Of a DNA stretch of 64,000 nt, positions 18,531 through 64,000 are shown piece by piece. Positions within the stretch are counted from its first letter, which is position 1; every line of letters starts with the position of its first letter. The DNA comes from Podarcis cretensis (Eukaryota). The notes under the pieces are model-generated. The model searched no databases. It worked only from the letters and a program-made list of their open reading frames with translations, and was not told where the DNA came from. Location of the stretch: contig OX638160.1 of the NCBI GenBank assembly GCA_951804945.1, positions 32,736,001 to 32,800,000 on the forward strand. The letters are read 5' to 3'. Position numbers and translations under genes: made by a program.

Positions 18531-18538
18531 ATGCACAG

Positions 18539-19364
18539 TGTCAGGGGTTCAGGAGCAGAAGCATAGGGAAGAGGGGAGATGGAGAGCGAAGGGGAAGAAT
18601 CCGAGGGCAGCGTAGGAGAAGATGACAGTGGCCCGAGAGATTCCATGAGCCTCTCCAGCGAATCGGAAGATTCACAGAAGGGGGCGCCGGTGGCCAGGGC
18701 AAGGGGGGTCCCAAGGGGGACACCCCAGAAGCAAGGGGCCAGCGGGGACTCCCAGAGCAGCAGTTGGAAATCAGGACCAGCTTCCCCACCAGAGCATAGT
18801 GGGGGGGAAGAGTCACAGGTATCGGGAGTAGCGTCTCCCCCAGCAGGGAGAGGAGAGGAGTCAGGGCTGACCACGCCTCCATCGGAGAGTCAGACAACGG
18901 AGGGGAGGTCAGATCCGGCCAGTATCCCGGAAGAGGGAAGCAGTGACAGAAGTAGTGTAACGGTCAGGAGGAAGGTCACTGGGTTGGCGCGAGAGGCAAG
19001 TTCAAATGTACAGGAGCATGGGACAGCAGAGAATGAGGATTGGGAACCGGGTCCTAAAGCCCGCCGGAGGCAGGGGGAGGAGCTAAGCGACTCAGCGTCA
19101 GAGGAGTCCAGAAAGGGGAATGCCCCAGCGGGCAGGAGGACCCAGAGGAGAAGAGAGCAGCGGAAAAGGTGGAGCAGGGCTAGGATCTTAAACTGGTGTC
19201 AGAGGGGAGGAGATTCAGACGGGACTTCGCCGATCTAGGGTTTAAGATGTAGGGCTGCGCGCTGCGGCTTTGAAATGGAAATTGAACTTCAATAAAGACT
19301 TTTGTACATTACGACAGCCTAGCGTTGGTCCTCTGTGAGCTGGGACCTAGAGGCAGCTCTGACA
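18539..19364 (+). mobile_element. Solo LTR (Gypsy-like), 826 bp, containing a 219-aa ORF
   Basis: TGTCAG...CTGACA termini, perfect 5-bp TSD CACAG (18534-38, 19365-69), AATAAA at 19291-96. Confidence 0.9.
18579..19238 (+). CDS. LTR-embedded ORF: disordered Ser/Glu/Gly-rich protein with Arg-rich C-terminus (putative U3-encoded Pol tail or accessory protein)
   Basis: Uninterrupted 219 codons covering ~80% of the LTR, ending RRTQRRREQRKRWSRARILNWC. Expression from this solo copy is not shown. Confidence 0.5.
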   Translation: MESEGEESEGSVGEDDSGPRDSMSLSSESEDSQKGAPVARARGVPRGTPQKQGASGDSQSSSWKSGPASPPEHSGGEESQVSGVASPPAGRGEESGLTTPPSESQTTEGRSDPASIPEEGSSDRSSVTVRRKVTGLAREASSNVQEHGTAENEDWEPGPKARRRQGEELSDSASEESRKGNAPAGRRTQRRREQRKRWSRARILNWCQRGGDSDGTSPI

Positions 19365-19371
19365 CACAGTA

Positions 19372-22140: not shown

Positions 22141-23155
22141 TTTCAAACTATACAATATTACCATCACTGTATACCTCTCTTTTGAAGGCTCATTTAAGCC
22201 TTTAGAAAGTGCAGACATTTGCTGTGAATGCTGCGGAAGGAGAAACTTGTGAGATATTGTGTGCATTCATCAGATTCACTTTCTCTTTAAGCAGCTTGGA
22301 GTTTTAGGGGCATCTGGGGAGTTCCATGGTGGAGTTGGGTGGAGAGAGAGAGATACAAAATGCCAACTAGTCTCTGGCTCATAGTTCTTATTTGCTTGTT
22401 TTCATTTTATGGCAACTAATTAATGCGCAGCAGGCCAGGTCTAATCGCCTCTGTAGTGTTGCTTAAATCTGATGTTTAAATGTGCTTGCTGGGAGTGGGG
22501 TGTTGTGGGGATACCTTTCCTAATGTCATCTTAACTTCCTTAATGATTCAGGGCATTTAAACATAAATTTAGCCTATCACAGTAGTGAAACCTTTGCAGT
22601 CATACAGTGGAACACGAAAGCCAGAAGGAATTTGAAAGAAACAACTGCATAAATTCTTAACAGAAACTGATTTAGTGAGTGTGTTTTCCTGTTCCTTTGA
22701 ACATTCGTGATCCTGAGTACGGACCTTATTGTTTGCCATTTCTAATTTCCAACCCCCAAATATGATCTCATTACAATTCTCCTCCTGGGATTTGGCCTCT
22801 TTCATACTACTAGAAGGTGGTGGGCACAAAATTTCTTGGAGAATGAAGGTATTGATCGTGACATCACTAGATAGGAAACACTCAGGACCAGCTTCACCAT
22901 TAGGCAGAGTGAGACAGCTGCCTCAGGCAGACAAATCTGGGTGTTGTGAAAGGGCAGCACATAGTGAATTATTTAATTTACACTTGTTGTGATTTTTACT
23001 CCCTGGATAAAAGCGTCTGTGGGATTTTCTGTCTCAAGAACACAACAACCTGGCCAACCTTGGATATCATGCATTTTGTCTTGGGACTGTCATTTTCTGT
23101 TCTGCATCAGACAGAAAAATGTTCTGTGCAGGCCCTGGAAATGCTGGTTTGAAAA

Positions 23156-23250
23156 GGGGAAGGACTGCAGCTTAGTGGTAGAGCCTCCACTTTCCATGCA
23201 TAAGCTCTGAGGTTCAATCCCCAGATAGGGCTGGGAGAAAAACCTGTCTC
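23156..23250 (+). mobile_element. tRNA-derived SINE 5' part
   Basis: gcagcttagtggtagagc...aggttcaatcccc...agggctgggagaaaaacctgtct, same family as 11081. Confidence 0.7.
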
Positions 23251-23592
23251 AGGTCTCTCCTTCTCTCAGACTTCAGTCTCTGCAGCTCAGGAGATGCCGA
23301 TGGGTTACTAGACCCAGAGGCCGCCTCAGCCTCTCCTGACCCAACTGGTAGTGGAGCAGCTGTAAGTGATTGCCCAGCAGAGAACATTGAGGTAATCCCC
23401 GCATCTGGAGCCAGGGCAGGCTCAGGCCCCTGACTTGGCCCAGCTGGTGCTTGTTGCAGGGGAACCTGTGCAGACTGGGACTCTTCAGAATCAGGCCCCA
23501 GACTAGGTTCAGATGCCGCCTGAGGCAAAGGATCTGGTGCAGACTGAGACTCCTCTGGCTCCGAGTCTGACTCAAAGTCCCAGGCCATCACA
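23251..23592 (-). mobile_element. Truncated ORF-bearing LTR, homologous to 42346-42949
   Basis: Starts TGTGATGGCCTGGGA on the minus strand. Open frame MAWDFESDSEPEESQ...GSSNPSASPELQRLKSERRRDL. Confidence 0.8.
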
Positions 23593-24889: not shown

Positions 24890-25509
24890 TTCTCTTATAA
24901 TAGCAATGGCACCCACCTGATTGGTGCCAGAACCAAGTTTTGGCTAGGGCAGGGGAAGCCCTGCTAGATCTAGTGTTATCAGGGATTTCAATTGCAAGGA
25001 GACTTCTAAGCATGTTCAGGCAAATGTTCTTAGAAGGCTCCTTCAACAGTAGGTGGAAACCAGAGCCAAATGAAAAGGCTGAGCCACCCCAACTGATTAT
25101 ATATAAAAAAGGCAAGCAGCTGAGATCAGGGCAAAGTGAGGATGGTGAGGCAATGCCCCATTCACTTTAATGGGCTAGTCTCCAATGGCTACTTTGGATA
25201 CTTCTTTTGCTGGTGGTATCTAGAGATAAGCTCCCAAATTGAGAGTTTTGGGGAGGGGGCGAGGAGCAGATACTGGACAGAGGTAGCCCTGGGTCCTTTG
25301 ACTCTGGAGTCTCTTCATTCCTCTAAGACAGTGATGGCCAAACTTGGCCCTCCAGCTGTTTTTGGACTACAACTCCCATCATCCCTTGTTAACAGGACTA
25401 GTGGTCAGGGATAATGGGAATTGTAGTCCCAAAACAGCTGGAGGGCCGAGTTTGGCCATCACTGCTCTAAGAGGTCCCAGGATTGGGCTCCTTGACTATG
25501 ACAGTGACA
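24890..25509 (-). mobile_element. Decayed LTR-like element with remnant U3 reading frame, interrupted by a hAT MITE
   Basis: Minus strand starts TGTCA at 25509. After removing the MITE the phase-2 frame reads VTVIVKEPNPGTS*RNEETPESKDPGLP...SPPP..., followed by TATATAA. Left boundary approximate. Confidence 0.4.
25329..25464. mobile_element. Palindromic hAT-type MITE
   Basis: TIRs CAGTGATGGCCAAACT / AGTTTGGCCATCACTG. Perfect 8-bp TSD CTCTAAGA. Confidence 0.93.
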
Positions 25510-32827: not shown

Positions 32828-33338
32828 GACAAACTTAGACAGCATCTTAAAAAGTAGAGACATCACCTTGTCAACAAAGGTCCGTATAGTAAAAGCTATG
32901 GTTTTCCCAGTAGTGATGTATGGAAGTGAAAGCTGGACCATAAAGAAGGCTGATCGCTGTAGAATTGATGCTTTTGAATTATGGTGCTGGAGGAGACTCT
33001 TGAGAGTCCCGTGGACTGCAAGAAGATCAAACCTATCCATTCTTAAGGAAATCAGCCCTGAGTGCTCATTGGAAGGATTGATCGTGAAGCTGAGGCTCCA
33101 ATACTTTGGCCACCTCATGAGAAGAGAAGACTCCCTGGAAAAGACCCTGATGTTGGGAAAGATGGAGGGCACAAGGAAAAGGGGACGACAGAGGGCGAGA
33201 TGGTTGGATAGTGTTCTCGAGGCTACCAGCATGAGTTTGAGCAGACTGCGGGAGGCAGTGGAAGACAGAAGTGCCTGGTGTGCTCTGGTCCATGGGGTCA
33301 CGAAGAGTCGGACACGACTAAACGATTAATCAATAACA
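32828..33338 (+). mobile_element. Bov-B LINE (RTE clade) 3' fragment, frame intact
   Basis: Encodes TKVRIVKAMVFPVVMYGSESWTIKKADRCRIDAFELWCWRRLLRVPWTARRSN...HGVTKSRTRLND. Possible TSD attttag. Confidence 0.95.
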
Positions 33339-40705: not shown

Positions 40706-42345
40706 CTGAGAGGAAGGGGTATCTGTGTGTCTGTTTTTCTAGTAGGAAGGGGAGTGTCCATACCTCATCTCCAAATGCCAAGATCCCAGTCAGCTTCAAC
40801 TGCAATAAATGCACTTGTGGTGTTTCCATAGTTACTTGGAGGAGCTGCATAACCCTCAACAGTGACTGATCAAACCAGCAAGTTTCCCAACCACCCTTGC
40901 TGTAAGGAAGGTACCCATCATGCATTCATGGCTGCTTGGGGATTTGAGCCTTGCAAGGCTCCCTTCTGAGCAACCACACTACTGCCTTTCCCACAAATTG
41001 GTGCAGGAGGGCTTCTATGGAGGGGTGGGATAGAATATGGGCAACCGTAATTGTGGGCTTAGCTAGCAGGGCCAGACAAATATCGTACAGCTTGATAAAA
41101 TATGTCTGCGACACATAACTGGGTGAGTACATTAAAAGCCATAAACTTCTAAGCTTGATATAAAGAGGATCAATGTCCATTGTCAAGTAAGGTTACTCAA
41201 GTAACAGGGACATGCAGTCTATTGTTACATGTTCTCTCCTGGCTGACATGTCAGAGGCCTTTGTGGAGACTAGGGCTTTGTAAGGAGATAGACCTGGAGG
41301 GAACTGAAGTGTTAGGGGAGATAGTCATAATCAGTGAGACCAAGGCAGTGAGGCTGAGCTAAACAGTATGTTAGTGAGGAATGTGATTTCTGGCGAACAA
41401 TAGAGTGAGAGCAAGTTAGTGGCTAGAGGAGCAAGTTAGCGAATGAGGGGCAGAGTTGAGACAAAACAACATAATAATGTAACTAGAATTTTGTACCGTG
41501 CTTCTGAGATAGTTCAGATGCTTAGCAGGGGATCCTCCCATGCAAGCTATAATGGGTAAAAAAGAGGTTATCATCAAAATCTATCTAAATGACTCAAGTA
41601 AAACAGCTTGCATTTTGCCTTATGGGTATCATTAGAACATGACCATCTCTCAATTTTGCTGGACTTTTGGACAGGATGTTCTCCGTGAGTTTCAACTCTT
41701 TGCTGCTTACACTGCCTTGCTCATTTGCCCTCTCCATCTGTGGTCATGGACTTTTTTAGTAAACACATTTCTTGCAAGTCAGTTACCTAAATTATTTAAG
41801 TGGTATCTACTCAGTTTTGAGAAGATAGCCAAAGAGTCCTACAATGGGTGTCCCCTACCAAGCTGTGTTTACAGCAGCCCAAGCAGGGTGAAATGGCTAC
41901 ATCTAGCCATTCTCTAAATTCCCCACAATTCCTCAGGGTGATGCTTGACACTGGGGGGGCATTTATGAGAATTTAAATGTGATCTAGAGAGCCTGACATC
42001 CTGGAGCTACTCAAGAGTTTGAGGCCAGGAAAAAAAACAATTTAAGAGACAAGCATCAACAGATGGTTTCACTAAATCTCTCACTACTCAATTTCTTTGT
42101 TGCTTCCAGAATTCCAGCTCCACTGTTTGTGCACTTCCCCAGTTTGACAAAATGTCTCCCACACACTCACACAATGTGCAGCCTGAGTGGCGCAGCGATG
42201 ACGGAATGCTGGCATAGCAAAATTCTTGACAGTTTAAATTCAAAAACTGACAGTTTGAAACACATATGCGTCTTTAACTGTCTTTAGTAAGAATGGGAAT
42301 CTCATATGAAACAAAAATATGGAAACACGATTATATGTGTTGTTG

Positions 42346-42949
42346 TGTGCTGGTCCTGGGGGGAGGTTACCGTGAGGCATGGTCAGAGTCCGGTCCTGGG
42401 TCAAGGGTCTGGAGACAGTCCACAAAGGGCGAAGCGGGGTCTGAAGCAAGAAGCCGGGGCGTGGTCGGGAACTCCGGAAGAACAGGTCTGGGTGCTGGCA
42501 GAAGCAGGTTTCCAGTGACGTTGCTCCCGCAACCTGGGACTGGGCTGACTGGCCTTTATCTCCTCTGAGGCCAGGGGCGGTCCCGGCCCACAGGTGACCC
42601 GCCTCTCCTGGCCTTAAGGTGAGCACTCCTCCTGGGAGAAACCAGTTCCCTCTGCCTCTCTGCCCTGAGCCTCTGCAGCTCAGGAGAGGCTGAAGCATTA
42701 CTGGACCCAGGGGCAGCTTCACCTTCCCCTGACAGGGCTGGGAGAGGCACACCTGCAGGCAATGGGTCCTCAATCATCTCCGGAGCCAGAGTGGATGCAT
42801 CTGGTGTCTGCTCCTGAGGACCCGGCACAGGTGCAGGCCCTTCAGATTCAAGCCCCTGCCCCGGCTCAGCCGGCCCTGGAGGCGGGGACTCCTGTGTAGG
42901 CTGGGACTCCTCAGATTCAGCTTCTGAATCAGATTCCCAGGCCATCACA
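42346..42949 (-). mobile_element. Solo LTR (Gypsy-like), 604 bp, containing a 129-aa ORF
   Basis: TGTG...CACA termini. Perfect 5-bp TSD TGTTG (42341-45, 42950-54). Confidence 0.9.
42556..42945 (-). CDS. LTR-embedded ORF: acidic/Pro-rich disordered protein ending SPELQRLRAERQRELVSPRRSAHLKARRG
   Basis: ATG at LTR base 5 opens 129 codons, homologous to the frame at 23251-23588. The ORF-track start at 43044 lies in the neighbouring LTR and is incidental. Confidence 0.5.
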   Translation of the reverse strand: MAWESDSEAESEESQPTQESPPPGPAEPGQGLESEGPAPVPGPQEQTPDASTLAPEMIEDPLPAGVPLPALSGEGEAAPGSSNASASPELQRLRAERQRELVSPRRSAHLKARRGGSPVGRDRPWPQRR

Positions 42950-42954
42950 TGTTG

Positions 42955-51649: not shown

Positions 51650-52129
51650 TGTCAGGGACTGGACTGAGGAGGAATGGTAGAGACTGCCTCCCCCTCCTCC
51701 TGAACCTTCCAGAGAAGAGGAAGACAGTATAGATTTACAACAGTGGTTTGGAGAAGGTCATGGCTCAGAGATATAATAAAGGGAAATAATGAAAGAAAAG
51801 GAGGCGGGAAGCAGAGCCAGAGCTATCATTATCATTAGAAAGCATTCCAGACCCCCCTTCTCCCAGAACCTGATGGACAGTGAAAGTGGGAGAGCAGAAA
51901 GCGAAGAGGCAAATGGCCTTAAGCAGCTACTGTAAGGGTGGTTGTGCTGTTGACGACTGAGAAGGGAGGGGGGGGAGATTACTCGGAGCAACTCCATTAC
52001 CCAAAGAGGCAGCATTTCTAAGCGTCTCTCTGTGAACATTGAATAAAAGACATTGGTAAGAGCTTCTCATCTATCTATTGCTGGCAGCCTGCCGTGAGGG
52101 GGAAGGTTGGGATTCCCTGAAGCCTGACA
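51650..52129 (+). mobile_element. Solo LTR with decayed acidic/SP/basic U3 frame
   Basis: TGTCAGG...CCTGACA termini, AATAAA at 52042-47. Phase-2 frame VRDWTEEEW*RLPPPPPEPSREEEDS..., later PPSPRT*WTVKVGEQKAKR. TSD imperfect (tatga/tatac). Confidence 0.75.
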
Positions 52130-52551
52130 TATACTATAAATATCACAACAAACAATAACACAAAACACTAATAATGCAAAACACTATCCCATTTGCAGGC
52201 ATTTAGTTGGGCACTGTGAAAACAAGATGCTGGCTTAGATGGGTCATTGGTCTAATTGGTCTTCTTATATCAAATTTATTTCTGTTAGGTTGGATGGATC
52301 CTGGGGTTTCCTTCTTCTGACAAAAGTAGCTACTTCTGTATATCAACCTTTGAAGTTGGGCAACTAGGTGGTTGACAATTCTCTCATAGCAGCACCAAAG
52401 GGTTCCCCAGATCTGTGACTTCTGCTTACTCCCTAGTCTTATTAAAAGCAATGAAAATGAAAGAATTTATCTCTGCAACTTGTGCTGGAACAATGCAGAA
52501 TATTTTGCTTCATTAGTTATGAAATATTCCATTAATTTGATGAGTTTATAT

Positions 52552-52683
52552 CAGGCATAAGCAAACTCGGCCCTCCAGATGTTTTTGGACTACAACTCCC
52601 ATGATCCCTAACAGGACCAGTGGTCAGGAATGATGGGAATTGTAGTCCCCAAACATCTGGAGGGCCAGGTTTGCCTATGCCTG
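52552..52683. mobile_element. Palindromic hAT-type MITE (related to 25329-25464)
   Basis: TIRs CAGGCATAAGCAAAC / GTTTGCCTATGCCTG. Perfect 8-bp TSD GTTTATAT. Confidence 0.92.
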
Positions 52684-54496
52684 GTTTATATGTTGGGATA
52701 CCTTTTTATATTACATGCTTCCTGTTCAGAGTTTAAGAGTTTATGTCTCTGAGTTAACTGGGAAGCAGCTGTTCAAGGGGGAAACCCCTATTTAATGATG
52801 AGGTTAAAGGAGGATATAGGATATGAACTAGATACTCCCCCATTTATAATCTTCCAGTGGAAACCTCTCTCCAACAACTTTTGACTCATTATTGCACAAA
52901 GCCCCTAAGTCAATATTTTACTTTAACATCTCAAGTATGTTTTCCCACTTCACAAAATATAGTAAAACCCATTGCTTGCTTTTGCTCTTTAAGTTAGCTG
53001 GACTGGAAGGAGGGTGCTAGGAAAACAATTGCTCTCTTATATTTCATTTTCCATTTATAATTTATTATATACCTTAAGCAGCAAGTGCAATCAGTTCTAC
53101 ATTTTATTTAGTGCCCCATTGCAATTATTTCATTTATTTATGTAAACTTTTTCATGTACTGTTTATTTTGCATTATGCTTTTGCTGTTTTATCAGTTCTA
53201 CATTATTTACTATTTATTTTGAAAGTGCGTATGTACAACTGTACACCATTTGTCAGTTTTGATTAATATATCTTTTAATTCACTTTCTTTTTGGTTTGGT
53301 TCAGGCTCTTTGGTCACTATTCATATTCTCACTGGAGCATATTACTATACTCTGAATTTAGAATTTGTTTTTCTCTGAGGACCTAATTAAAAGGTAATAC
53401 ACACAGACACACACACACACACCTGCCTTTGTTCCATCATGGAACTCAATATGGTGTAATTTAGGTTCAAAGGTGATTTCCTACCTAGAATTGACCAGAC
53501 TCAAACCTGGTTCCTTTAAGCAAGGTAATTACATCTTGTACTATTGGACCCTTTCCTTAGGACCATAGTCCTGAAGGTGTGAAGTGATGCATTTGTTCAC
53601 TAACTGATACGTAAACAACCCAAAGACATAGGAAATTCAAACACAGAATATCTTAGAAAGAAGATTATCTACCACATGTGTATCCTAAATGAATACTAGA
53701 TTTGGTGCATTAAAAATAAGCTAAACAAGGACAAATCTAGCCAATGGCCTTTTGTATAATTATTGTCGTCATTATTTTCAAACCCCATCAAAGCAGAGCA
53801 TGCACTCTCACCATCTTACAAGCTTTGTCACTTTTATACAGCCAGAACTTCAAGTACTCTCAATTCTGTAATTATACCCCTTTTTATCACTGGTGAAGTG
53901 TTATATAAAAAGAATAAAATTGCTTCCTGGGAAATAGAATTTCTACTGAGAAGAACTCATTACAGGAGGCAGCAATTTTACTGAGCTTACAAATTACATA
54001 TTATTGTTAAAGTCTATTTCAAATCACTTATTCAGAGAGCAAGAAAGATTGATTCAGAGAACATAAACACCCAAGGCTTACCCAGAGGTTGATGTCATAC
54101 ATGGTTTCTTTTAAGGGCCTGTTTACATAATCGTTTATCCTGGGGTGGCTACCTCTGATGCACTTCAGTTTCTGACTTGTTTACATGCTCAAGTAGTGAA
54201 CCAGAAGTGAGAGAGAGCAAAATTAGGGACTCTCGATTCACATTTTACCCTGGGATAACTAGCAACAACGGAATTGTCATTTCTAGCATACAGAGAGTGG
54301 GTGGAATGGGCTGCAGGGAGGATCACAGATCCAGGCACTCAGCTTTGTGAAGCAGGGGGTAAAAAAAAAAGACACCCCCCCCCAAAGTGAGGCCTGAAGC
54401 AAAATGTTGCAGCATAGAGGGCTCTCATTCAGGTTTCCAGCCAGCTACAGTATCTATGTCCTTTCCCAGGATACTGCATTCTATCCCCCTAAGCCT

Positions 54497-55032
54497 ACTT
54501 CTTGGGAGAAATGCAATGACAAACCTAGACAGCATCTTAAAAGCAGAGACATCACCTTGCCGACCAAGGTCTGTATGGTTAAAGCTATGGTTTTCCCAGT
54601 AGTGATGTATGGAAGTGAGAGCTGGACCATAAAGAAGGCTGATCGCTGAAGAATTGATGCTTTTGAATTATGGTGCTGGAGGATACTCTTGAGAGTCCCA
54701 TGGACTGCAAGAAGATCAAACCTATCCATTCTGAAGGAAATCAGCCCTGAGTGCTCACTGGAAGGACAGATACTGAAGCTGAGGCTCCAATACTTTGGCC
54801 AACTCATGAGAAGAAAAGGCTCCCTGGAAAAGACCCTGATGTTGGGAAAGATGGAGGGCACAAGGAGAAGGGGACGACAGAGGACGAGATGGATGGACAG
54901 TGTTCTCGAAGCTACAAACATGAGTCTGACCAAACTGCAGGAGGCAGTGGAAGACAGGAGTGCCTGGCGTGCTCTGGTCCATGGGGTCATGAAGAGTCGG
55001 ACACGACTAAAAGACTAAACAACAACAACAAC
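54497..55032 (+). mobile_element. Bov-B LINE 3' fragment with nonsense codon and (AAC)n tail
   Basis: Highly similar to 32828-33338. TGA at 54647-49 and a frameshift near 54540. Tail aacaacaac. Confidence 0.95.
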
Positions 55033-58995: not shown

Positions 58996-60499
58996 TTTTT
59001 TTTAATATAATATTTATTAATAGTTTTTTTAAATTATAACATAATAAACAAAACATACAAAAAACATCACATTTCATAACATATTTTCTTATCCTTTTTA
59101 GACTTCCTCACATCTCCCTCTCCTACGTTCCAAAATATAAAAATTAATTCAGCAATTTGTCACCTTGTCCCCACCTTATCTAATTTTCCAATGTTATATC
59201 TTAAATTTTAGATATATTCATTTAACTTTTTAAAACTTTTTAATTTAGCCTAATCATTATCTAAAAGTTGATTTTTTTCCTAAATTTAGCTTATCTTCAT
59301 AGTTCAGTTTATCTAATTCAATGGTGCCTAGTTGTTTGTGATCAAGCATCCTCCTTAACATTCATACAGTTTACAATATTTTTGCAAATAGTCCTTAAAT
59401 TTCTTCCAATCTTCTTCCACCGTCTCCTCTCCCAGGTCTCGAATTCTGCCAGTCATCTCAGCCAGTTCCATATATTCTATCAGTTGCATCTGCCATTCTT
59501 CCAGTGTGGGTAGATCTTGGGTTTTCCAATGCTTCGCAACGAGTATCCTTGCTGCTATTGTTGCATACATAAAAAATGTTCGGTCATTCCTTAGCACCCT
59601 CTGGTCAACGATGCCCAAAAGGAAGGCCTCTGGTTTCTTAGGGAAGGTATACTTAAATACCTTTTTCAGCTCATTGTATATCATTTCCCAGAAGGCCTTA
59701 ACCCTAGGGCAAGTCCACCAGAGGTGAAAGAACGTTCCTTCACTTTCCCTGCATTTCCAACACTTATTATCAGACAAGTGGTATATTTTTGCAAGTTTGA
59801 CTGGGGTCATGTACCATCTATATATCATTTTCATTATTTTCTTTCAAAGCATTACATGCAGTGAAATTCAGCCCAATGGTCCATAACTTTTCCCAGTCCT
59901 CAAACATAATATTATACCCAATGTCCTGTGCCCACTTTATCATAGCTGATTTAACCATTTCATCTTGTGTGTTCCATTTTAACAGCAAGTTATACATTCT
60001 TGAGAGTACCTTAGTCTTAGGCTCTAACAGTTCCGTTTCTAACTTCGATTTTTCCACCTGGAATCCTAACTTTTTATCAAGTTTAAAAACTTCTTTAATC
60101 TGAGCATAATGTAACCAATCTCGCACTTTGTCTTTCATTTTCTCCTGACTCTGCAATTTCCAATTATCTCCATCTTTTTCTAATATTTCCCAATACTTTG
60201 GCCATTTGGCTTCCATATTGAGTCTTTTCCGGGCCTTAGCTTCCAATGGTGAAAGCCACCTTGGAGTTTTGTTTTCCAATAAGTCTTTGTATTTTGTCCA
60301 GACATTAAACACTGCTTTTCTGACAATATGGTTCTTGAAATTCTTATTGATCTTAACCTTGTCATACCATAAATATGCATGCCAACCAAACGCATTGTCA
60401 AAACCTTCCAGATCTAGTACATCAGTGTCTTCGAGAAGCAGTCAATCTTTCAACCAGCAAAAAGCTGCTGATTCATAGTACAGCCTTAAGTCTGGCAGG
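58996..60499 (-). mobile_element. L1-clade LINE, 5'-truncated (ORF2 C-terminus with CCHC knuckle, 3' UTR, poly(A))
   Basis: Encodes LPDLRLYY, YRWYMTPVKLAKIY and CWKCRESEGTFFHLWWTCPRVKAFW. TSD catatatattaatg(tt) at 58982-97 and 60500-15. Confidence 0.93.
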
Positions 60500-62938: not shown

Positions 62939-63530
62939 TCTTCTTCTTCTCCTTTGGTGATCACTGATAGCTGAGTAAGATTGTCTTCCATAAACATGGT
63001 TTTAACAGTGACTGTGTAGGCCAGTTCTGGATCTACATGTCCTTCCGCAGTGGGGACATAGGTTTCCGGGCAGGAGTTGATCGTGGTGAAGGTTTGCCAA
63101 GAATTCCTTCCTCTTACCACATTTCTCCCTTTTGTCCTGTGTTTGAGCGTCTTCCAAGCCCACAGCACCTTTGGTAAAGGCTCTTCTCCAATTGGAGCGC
63201 TCGCAGGCCAGTGTTTCCCAGTTGTCGGTGTTTAAACTACACTTTCTTAGATTTACCTTGAGAGAGTCTTTAAACCTCTTTTGTTGACCACCAGCATTAC
63301 GCTTTCCATTTTTAAGTTTGGAATAGAGTAGTTGGTTTGGAAGATGATAATCAGGCACCCGCACAATATGACCAGTCCAACGAAGTTGATGTTGAAGAAC
63401 CATTGCTTTGACACCGGTGATCTTTGCTTCCAGTACACTGGCATTAGTTCGCCTGTCTTCCCAAGTGATGTGTAAAAATTTTCGGAGACACTGTTGATGC
63501 AATCTTTCAAGGAGTTGAAGATGATGCTTA
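62939..63530 (-). mobile_element. RTE-clade LINE (non-Bov-B) 3' fragment
   Basis: Encodes LERLHQQCLRKFLHITWEDRRTNASVL, QLRWTGHIVRVPDYHLP, GGQQKRFKDSLK and CPHCGRTCRSRTGLHSH. (GAA)n tail. Confidence 0.9.
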
Positions 63531-64000
63531 TTATTGGAGTTCAAAGACATGTTCCAGTAAAGAGAGAGCAAAGCAGGGCTTGTGAAGGATGTGGTCTGGG
63601 GAGAGTTACGAAAGGTCAGACAGAGAGGACTAGAAGACCACATTCAGTTGCTTGGCCTCAAGTTGCTTGCAGAACTTGCCAAGATGATAGTGTACGCTTG
63701 TTTCTATGGGCAACTTTGGGTAGCAGTTGCAAAATTCCAATAGCAGGAATCCTGAATGCAGAGAAATCTCCTTCTGGACAATTTACCCATCCCTATAATA
63801 AGATTTGTTCATGTAGAAGCATATATTGCAGGAGGACTGGCTTTGCTAGAGCATAACTTTCTGCAGTGATACAACTGTACCAGCAATAAAAATTAATTTT
63901 TCAGCACCAATACTGAAGCATCAGGCTTTTTCATTTATTCTACCAAGCTGTATTCCCTAGACTCACATTGCAGATATGTGCAAAGAAGAACTGGAGCTGA

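Follow-up and report, generated by a model that had tools for sequence, protein, structure and literature searches.

A Podarcis chromovirus long terminal repeat with a candidate integrase tail and an HMGN-like RRSARL motif

What, if anything, is encoded by an open frame that fills the U3 region of a lizard long terminal repeat (LTR)? We address this question at a solo LTR of 604 bp (42346..42949, minus strand) in a 64,000-nucleotide stretch of the Podarcis cretensis genome (assembly GCA_951804945.1, contig OX638160.1, positions 32,736,001 to 32,800,000; hereafter the window, to which all coordinates refer). The LTR belongs to a Ty3/Gypsy chromovirus family of Podarcis, here called MAW. A preliminary description of this DNA had proposed that U3 regions of such elements append a chromatin-anchoring or nuclear-import tail to integrase. 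We find that the best explanation overall is a Podarcis chromovirus LTR encoding an integrase tail with an RRSARL targeting block, a reading to which we assign a probability of roughly 0.55.

The LTR has TG...CA ends (TGTG...CACA) with a short inverted repeat and carries on either side the 5-bp target-site duplication (TSD) TGTTG (left copy 42341..42345, right copy 42950..42954). Its frame, VMAWESDSEAESEESQ...SPELQRLRAERQRELVSPRRSAHLKARR..., lies on the minus strand at 42556..42948 and runs from LTR base 2 over 130 codons (Val-Met-Ala-Trp-Glu-Ser-Asp...), filling U3 up to a TAA at 42558-42556; Val corresponds to LTR bases 2-4, and 129 codons remain from the Met at 42945-42943. The stop codon lies within GATAAA, a TATA-like box (42555..42560, minus strand). 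In these respects the sequence bears out the preliminary description, which had reported a TSD-flanked LTR, a frame opening at base 2, a stop in GATAAA and a histidine encoded by CAC. A TATA box at this place is plausible from the family alignment, since other MAW copies read GATAAAAGG or CATATAAAAGCC there; the family includes TATAAAA variants. The presumed R-U5 remainder (42346..42530, minus strand) is a different sequence in most family copies, and AATAAA was not found in the 3' part of the LTR.

MAW LTRs are multi-copy: from two DNA runs, 3,503 and 4,022 contig pieces align onto 42346-42949, and the summed DNA depth there is far above that of the flanks, which is single-copy. Depth is about 10-fold lower on 42346-42530 than on 42510-42950, and reads and contigs from RNA and DNA runs alike have loose ends at 42517, where they leave the window copy for other sequence, indicating that the tail-coding module is common to sub-families with differing R-U5. 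No gag/pol internal sequence was found anywhere in the 64-kb window by tblastn with gag/pol models, and we therefore regard the LTR as solo. It is an old, decayed copy that performs none of the functions proposed below itself.

Evidence on the parent element comes from a profile search of 1.84 billion representatives, which found eight proteins; all six that were looked up are Podarcis gene models. Two of them, P0003 and P0011 from Podarcis muralis, contain a chromodomain (Pfam Chromo PF00385, E=5e-15) just before the LTR-encoded part, followed by about 30 residues and then, with no intervening stop, by ...GPGRGDGV-MAW(E/D)SDSE.... The Val of ...GDGV-MAW corresponds to LTR bases 2-4, and the Gly/Arg stretch is encoded over the polypurine tract. 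By eye, the chromodomain of P0003 and P0011 has the aromatic-cage residues Y, W and Y, as in HP1. Two further models, P0004 and P0010, match Retrotrans_gag, zf-CCHC, RVP_2 and RVT_1 in Pfam, and their gag part matches the PEG10 capsid structure 7lga (E=4.8e-16); these gag, protease and reverse-transcriptase models are tied to the MAW LTR through the common MAW sequence only. With a PEG10-like gag, CCHC knuckle, protease and reverse transcriptase seen in P0004 and P0010, the MAW parent is, by sequence, a Sushi/PEG10-like chromovirus, that is, a Ty3/Gypsy element with an integrase chromodomain, of Podarcis lizards.

Translating pol across the polypurine tract, a check that the preliminary description had put forward, gives an open path from chromodomain to V-MAW in P0003 and P0011 and, for a second family, an open junction in P0020 and P0021 (...GGFEGGMD-VRGSGAEA), in each case in protein models. 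We consider it highly probable on these models that the architecture is that of an LTR-encoded integrase tail, with pol running across the polypurine tract and ending in the 3' LTR. A read-derived protein (P0012, SRR4051812_27303270) is a third chromodomain protein, reading ...SRRGGNV-MIHYSSS..., with the junction phase and the TGTGATG-type LTR start of the MAW family. Judging from P0012, read-through of the polypurine tract may be wider than Podarcis. The preliminary description had also reported a fixed phase of such frames; we do not accept it as independent evidence, as the junction between polypurine tract and LTR is itself conserved and a shared phase may be inherited, and three junctions would fall in one phase in 1 case of 9 by chance.

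Is the frame coding or an accident of composition? A second copy of the LTR family in the window (23237..23592, minus strand) is diverged and truncated, keeps the frame over about 115 codons and belongs to the sub-family of P0001, with about 73% identity to the 42949 copy and 80% to P0001. The two window copies are separated by two 18-nt in-frame indels and, near the truncated end, by a later 8-nt out-of-frame indel. Their substitutions fall 25/29/49 on codon positions 1/2/3 of the MAW frame (Fisher P=1.9e-4, third versus first plus second). The dN/dS ratio, whose determination had likewise been suggested in the preliminary description, is 0.365 in the MAW frame (Nei-Gojobori); of the five remaining frames, four give 0.9-1.3 and the fifth, a reverse frame that shares the MAW third positions, gives 0.46. 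The MAW U3 frame is under purifying selection, and the pattern speaks for a constraint on the protein rather than on the U3 DNA as such. We read the frame as coding on the strength of the third-position excess, the gene models that run from chromodomain into MAW and the preservation of a basic block across sub-families. A homologue search with the 129-residue MAW frame returned no match among proteins of 71-226 residues, and a metagenome scan with the pattern of the LTR 5' end returned 0 matches. The 23592 copy ends against a piece of a tRNA-like short interspersed element (SINE; ...GGGGATTGAACCTCAGAGC..., 23150-23236, minus strand) and has lost the RRSARL region.

The tail has two parts. Residues 1-86 (42688..42945, minus strand) are acidic, rich in Ser, Glu and Pro, and fast-evolving. 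In a single-sequence AlphaFold model of P0003 most of the tail (residues 102-169) has a predicted local distance difference test score (pLDDT) under 50, and no 10-residue mean there exceeds about 50; the tail is unstructured in this model, which is itself of low confidence. From its composition, the tail of about 130 residues is probably disordered; the model contributes low confidence only. Residues 87-116 (42598..42687, minus strand) form the conserved basic block SPELQRLRAERQRELVSPRRSAHLKARRGG, aligned with P0001, P0002, P0004 and P0010. Over the 15 codons of this block common to both window copies there are four synonymous and four non-synonymous differences; three of the latter are conservative (R/K, A/S, E/D), and the fourth is Q/R at a place where the window Gln is Arg in most MAW family copies.

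Within the block, the window copy reads RRSAHL (42616..42633, minus strand) where most family copies read RRSARL followed by K/Q-A, which matches seven of the eight residues of the HMGN core RRSARLSA. P0002 reads SPRRSARLKARRGG and P0001, from the other sub-family, CRRSARLQAKQGG, each 7/8, so that RRSARL is kept in both MAW sub-families; the window copy scores 6/8. Its His codon is CAC at 42621-42619, and at the middle base (42620) the Arg letter is present in about 90% of the family DNA depth and in 104 of 110 RNA reads; the preliminary description had noted that CAC is one CpG transition away from CGC, as in RRSARL. The RRSARL-type site is unique in the six-frame translation of the window, and 300,000 composition-matched shuffles produced exact RRSARL 19 times for one tail and 10 times for the other (3-6 per 100,000). 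In HMGN2, the contact modelled in the cryo-EM structure with the nucleosome consists of RRSAR, in which R23 and R26 make the main contacts to the acidic patch, and phosphorylated Ser24 is predicted to repel the acidic patch; AlphaFold 3 predictions of the HMGN2-nucleosome complex are reported to be unreliable (PMC12487698). A full-text literature search found no HMGN-like motif in a retrotransposon integrase.

Taken together, the MAW tail is most likely a chromatin or nuclear targeting extension of integrase. In the mechanism that we propose, the genomic RNA of a full-length element would hold U3 at its 3' end only, and the pol frame would read into it, passing from the chromodomain through the Gly/Arg stretch and the Val at LTR bases 2-4 over all of U3 to the TAA in the TATA-like box. 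Integrase would leave the polyprotein with its chromodomain and a tail of some 130 residues, whose RRSARL block would anchor the integration complex to the H2A-H2B acidic patch in the manner of the HMGN core, beside a chromodomain that would hold the methylated H3 tail. Alternatively or in addition, the basic block could serve in nuclear import, and the acidic part, with its CK2-like sites, might speculatively mask, shield or tune it. Nucleosome binding, nuclear import and phospho-regulation of the tail are all functions that we infer. On our analysis, nucleosome anchoring specifically has somewhat less than an even chance, and a two-part nucleosome reader on a lacertid chromovirus integrase, combining a chromodomain for the H3 tail with a U3-written HMGN-type anchor for the acidic patch, is a tentative idea that we hold to be doubtful.

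Several observations weigh against the reading of the tail as a U3-encoded targeting extension with an HMGN-type block. The length of the frame carries no signal by itself (P=0.40 for 130 open codons in dinucleotide-preserving shuffles of an LTR with 63% GC), and a different reading frame of this LTR stays open for 142 codons. Continuity from pol into U3 is seen at the level of protein models, four in number, in which small hidden introns are conceivable, and no single model holds both pol and the RRSARL block. The window frames, P0001 and P0002 gave no match to Pfam HMG14_17 at E values up to 10, and outside the eight-residue core there is no similarity to HMGN; we therefore call the block HMGN-like at the level of the motif and not an HMGN domain. 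The same proteins and frames matched no other Pfam domain in the MAW tails. A second LTR family of the window, MESE (see below), has a tail without RRSARL, and the motif is found in the MAW family only. Finally, two RNA runs labelled as a related species cover LTR bases 1 to about 433, with first mates on the plus strand over 42510-42710 and on the minus strand over 42572-42950; if these runs follow the most usual library convention, the bulk of the RNA over the acidic part would run antisense to the frame, and reads that pass the LTR start enter mixed flanks rather than the polypurine tract or pol. The RNA shows that MAW LTR copies are transcribed somewhere, which does not imply expression of full-length elements, and it neither supports nor opposes translation of the U3 frame.

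Among other explanations, the one that survives best accepts a real integrase tail and takes the basic block for a localisation signal, nuclear or nucleolar, or for an arginine-rich stretch binding RNA or DNA, with a coincidental match to RRSARL. The sequence is indeed rich in Arg and Lys on either side of the motif (RAERRREL...RRSARLKARRGG), MESE tails end in another arginine-rich stretch, and the missing HMGN profile match fits this explanation as well. However, two sub-families with only about 48% overall identity between their tails, and less in the acidic part, both retain exact RRSARL plus x-A, and the shuffles rarely produce the motif. We judge this explanation unlikely.

Less probable by far is a separate accessory protein, initiated at the ATG at LTR bases 5-7 and expressed from a spliced or internal transcript, as in retroviral genes that overlap U3. 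This ATG is kept in all MAW copies, in a context with a purine at -3 and G at +4, but it can be explained without any coding role: TGTGATG is a conserved chromovirus LTR terminus, with the same letters in P0012 and TGATG in the plant CRM elements (PMC3059260), and the MAW Met is for this reason not evidence for a separate start. Moreover, the pol models have no stop before the LTR, and in MESE the ATG is replaced by Thr or Ile codons in P0016, P0018 and P0019 while the frame is open from LTR base 2.

It is more improbable still that the frame is an N-terminal Gag extension read from the 5' LTR, as three Ensembl models would have it (P0002, P0004 and P0010), which begin with MAW... and pass a predicted intron into PEG10-like gag. 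In a 5' LTR, U3 precedes the start site of the element itself, the TATA-like box being at the end of the frame, and the joins between MAW and gag vary between isoforms, with gag having its own Met just past the join, as is typical of gene-builder artefacts on read-through transcripts. Since such models presuppose a transcript begun upstream of the 5' LTR, and differ in where they join, we read them as gene-builder products. Weakest of all is the view that a GC-rich LTR happens to have an open frame that codes for nothing; it fits the unremarkable frame length and the longer rival frame but leaves unexplained the third-position excess and dN/dS of about 0.37 in the MAW frame only (the weaker 0.46 being in the reverse frame with the same third positions), the two 18-nt indels that both keep the frame (the 8-nt indel near the truncated end does not) and the continuity with pol.

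The preliminary description had placed this layout in three dissimilar families, of which two stand: MAW, with its copies at 42949 and 23592, and MESE. The MESE LTR (18539..19364, plus strand; TSD CACAG at 18534-18538 and 19365-19369) belongs to a second, unrelated chromovirus-like family. Its frame leads from LTR base 2 (18540) to a TAG at 19236-19238, with an in-frame stop at 18564-18566 and an AATAAA at 19291-19296, and contains a 219-codon open reading frame (ORF) in the LTR-base-2 phase that is long for its composition (P=0.0125). P0015-P0017 have 52-63% identity to this ORF by BLASTP and 57-69% in alignment; P0016 and P0017 share its end residues, and P0015, whose last residues diverge, stops 2-3 residues earlier. 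From LTR base 2, P0016 and P0018-P0021 read on without a stop. The stop before the window ATG is private, and the ATG itself corresponds to Met in P0015 and to Thr or Ile in the three models named above. P0020 and P0021, from Podarcis lilfordi, read from a long upstream frame through ...GGFEGGMD into VRGSGAEA... and on to the same arginine-rich end, and P0021 opens with a weak resemblance to a chromodomain's second half (E=0.01, 29% over 42 residues, with no Pfam match). There is no detectable similarity between MAW and MESE tails; they have a common plan only, with an acidic and Ser-rich part first, a basic part last and a stop at a T/A-rich box. A general RRSARL-like anchor, as once supposed for all these LTRs, holds for both MAW sub-families (P0001, P0002) and neither for MESE nor for three families.

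The third LTR-like unit (TGTCAGG...CCTGACA, 51650..52129, plus strand) gives no support for a U3-encoded tail: its base-2 frame meets a stop after 9 codons and a further one some 30 codons on. The sites at 25509, 39642 and 46350, formerly listed as probable members, proved respectively to be a SINE, to share only about 35 nt with 51650, and to have no LTR features.

Pieces of the MAW tail are also found in host gene models (P0006, P0007 and P0001/P0009), which are either exonised solo LTRs or annotation artefacts. Such pieces supply the opening 60 residues of a model for a V2R-like receptor in P. lilfordi, residues 160-199 of a CEP63/Deup1 model in P. muralis and the start of NCBI LOC114604991. 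The suggestion that solo LTRs scatter coding modules draws only on the gene models P0001, P0006 and P0007.

Other repeats in the window include a palindromic short repeat with GGCCCTCCAG...CTGGAGGGCC arms (25340-25470 and 52546-52688), typical of a lizard miniature inverted-repeat transposable element (MITE) or SINE, of which the 25509 site is one copy; a 300-nt direct repeat (32850-33149 and 54539-54838, 93% identity) with long ORFs on both strands; and ORF remnants resembling long interspersed elements at 59358-60312 and 63005-63643, with a weak zf-RVT match at 59358-59834.

The MAW architecture is reminiscent of the plant CRM group A chromoviruses, in which the CR motif, an integrase targeting motif, is encoded in the 3' LTR (Neumann et al. 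2011, PMC3059260). Both are Ty3/Gypsy chromoviruses whose polyprotein frame crosses the polypurine tract and whose putative integrase targeting C-terminus lies in the 3' LTR, and they share the LTR terminus TG(T)GATG. In CRM, however, the CR motif replaces the chromodomain, whereas the Podarcis families, in a vertebrate host, add a tail of 130-220 residues that takes up the whole of U3 as far as the TATA-like box, and MAW keeps a canonical chromodomain. LTR-encoded integrase targeting is thus already known (PMC3059260), and the architecture itself is not new; what is new is a vertebrate chromovirus with a retained chromodomain plus a tail drawn from the whole U3, an HMGN-type core in that tail, and a second family with the same plan.

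As to the motif, HMGN-like sequences are known in tardigrade Dsup and yeast Dot5 (PMC12487698; PMC13347269). The RRSARL-x-A of P0001 and P0002 shares with the HMGN core RRSAR and the Ser whose phosphorylation weakens HMGN binding, although in MAW it follows an acidic stretch at the C-terminal end of a retrotransposon polyprotein, with a likeness limited to the core; the window copy has His at the counterpart of the HMGN2 arginine anchor R26. Arginine anchors also tether Kaposi's sarcoma-associated herpesvirus LANA, cytomegalovirus IE1 and prototype foamy virus Gag to the acidic patch (reviewed in PMC9040877). These resemble the MAW block as short basic peptides, the latter proposed for H2A-H2B docking, and in foamy virus the tether steers integration; the foamy tether is in Gag and not in integrase, the motif sequences differ and none is encoded in U3. 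In Ty1, Ty3, Ty5 and murine leukaemia virus, a short motif in the disordered integrase C-terminus tethers the integration complex to a host chromatin factor (PMC7459421, PMC4027182). There, the partners are Pol III, TFIIIB/C, Sir4 or bromodomain and extra-terminal (BET) proteins, not the nucleosome surface. To our knowledge, among these four only the pol frame of Ty3 ends inside the LTR, by a few codons.

The choice of integration sites by vertebrate LTR retrotransposons is poorly known beyond the chromodomain, and the MAW tail offers a testable idea. If the proposed function is true, MAW would be the first retrotransposon with an HMGN-like anchor on its integrase, and would carry the 'untapped realm' of HMGN-like motifs (PMC12487698) over to mobile elements. 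A whole U3 may do double duty, as coding sequence and as promoter; with the proposed function, the same DNA would act as enhancer and promoter in the 5' LTR and as a targeting domain in the 3' LTR. This bears on LTR annotation, where gene builders make first exons, spurious or real, out of such LTRs (P0001, P0002, P0004 and P0006), and on dating by LTR divergence, for which the MAW U3 is not neutral. If the tail does bind nucleosomes, solo LTRs in their thousands would offer host genes a ready-made exon for nucleosome binding.
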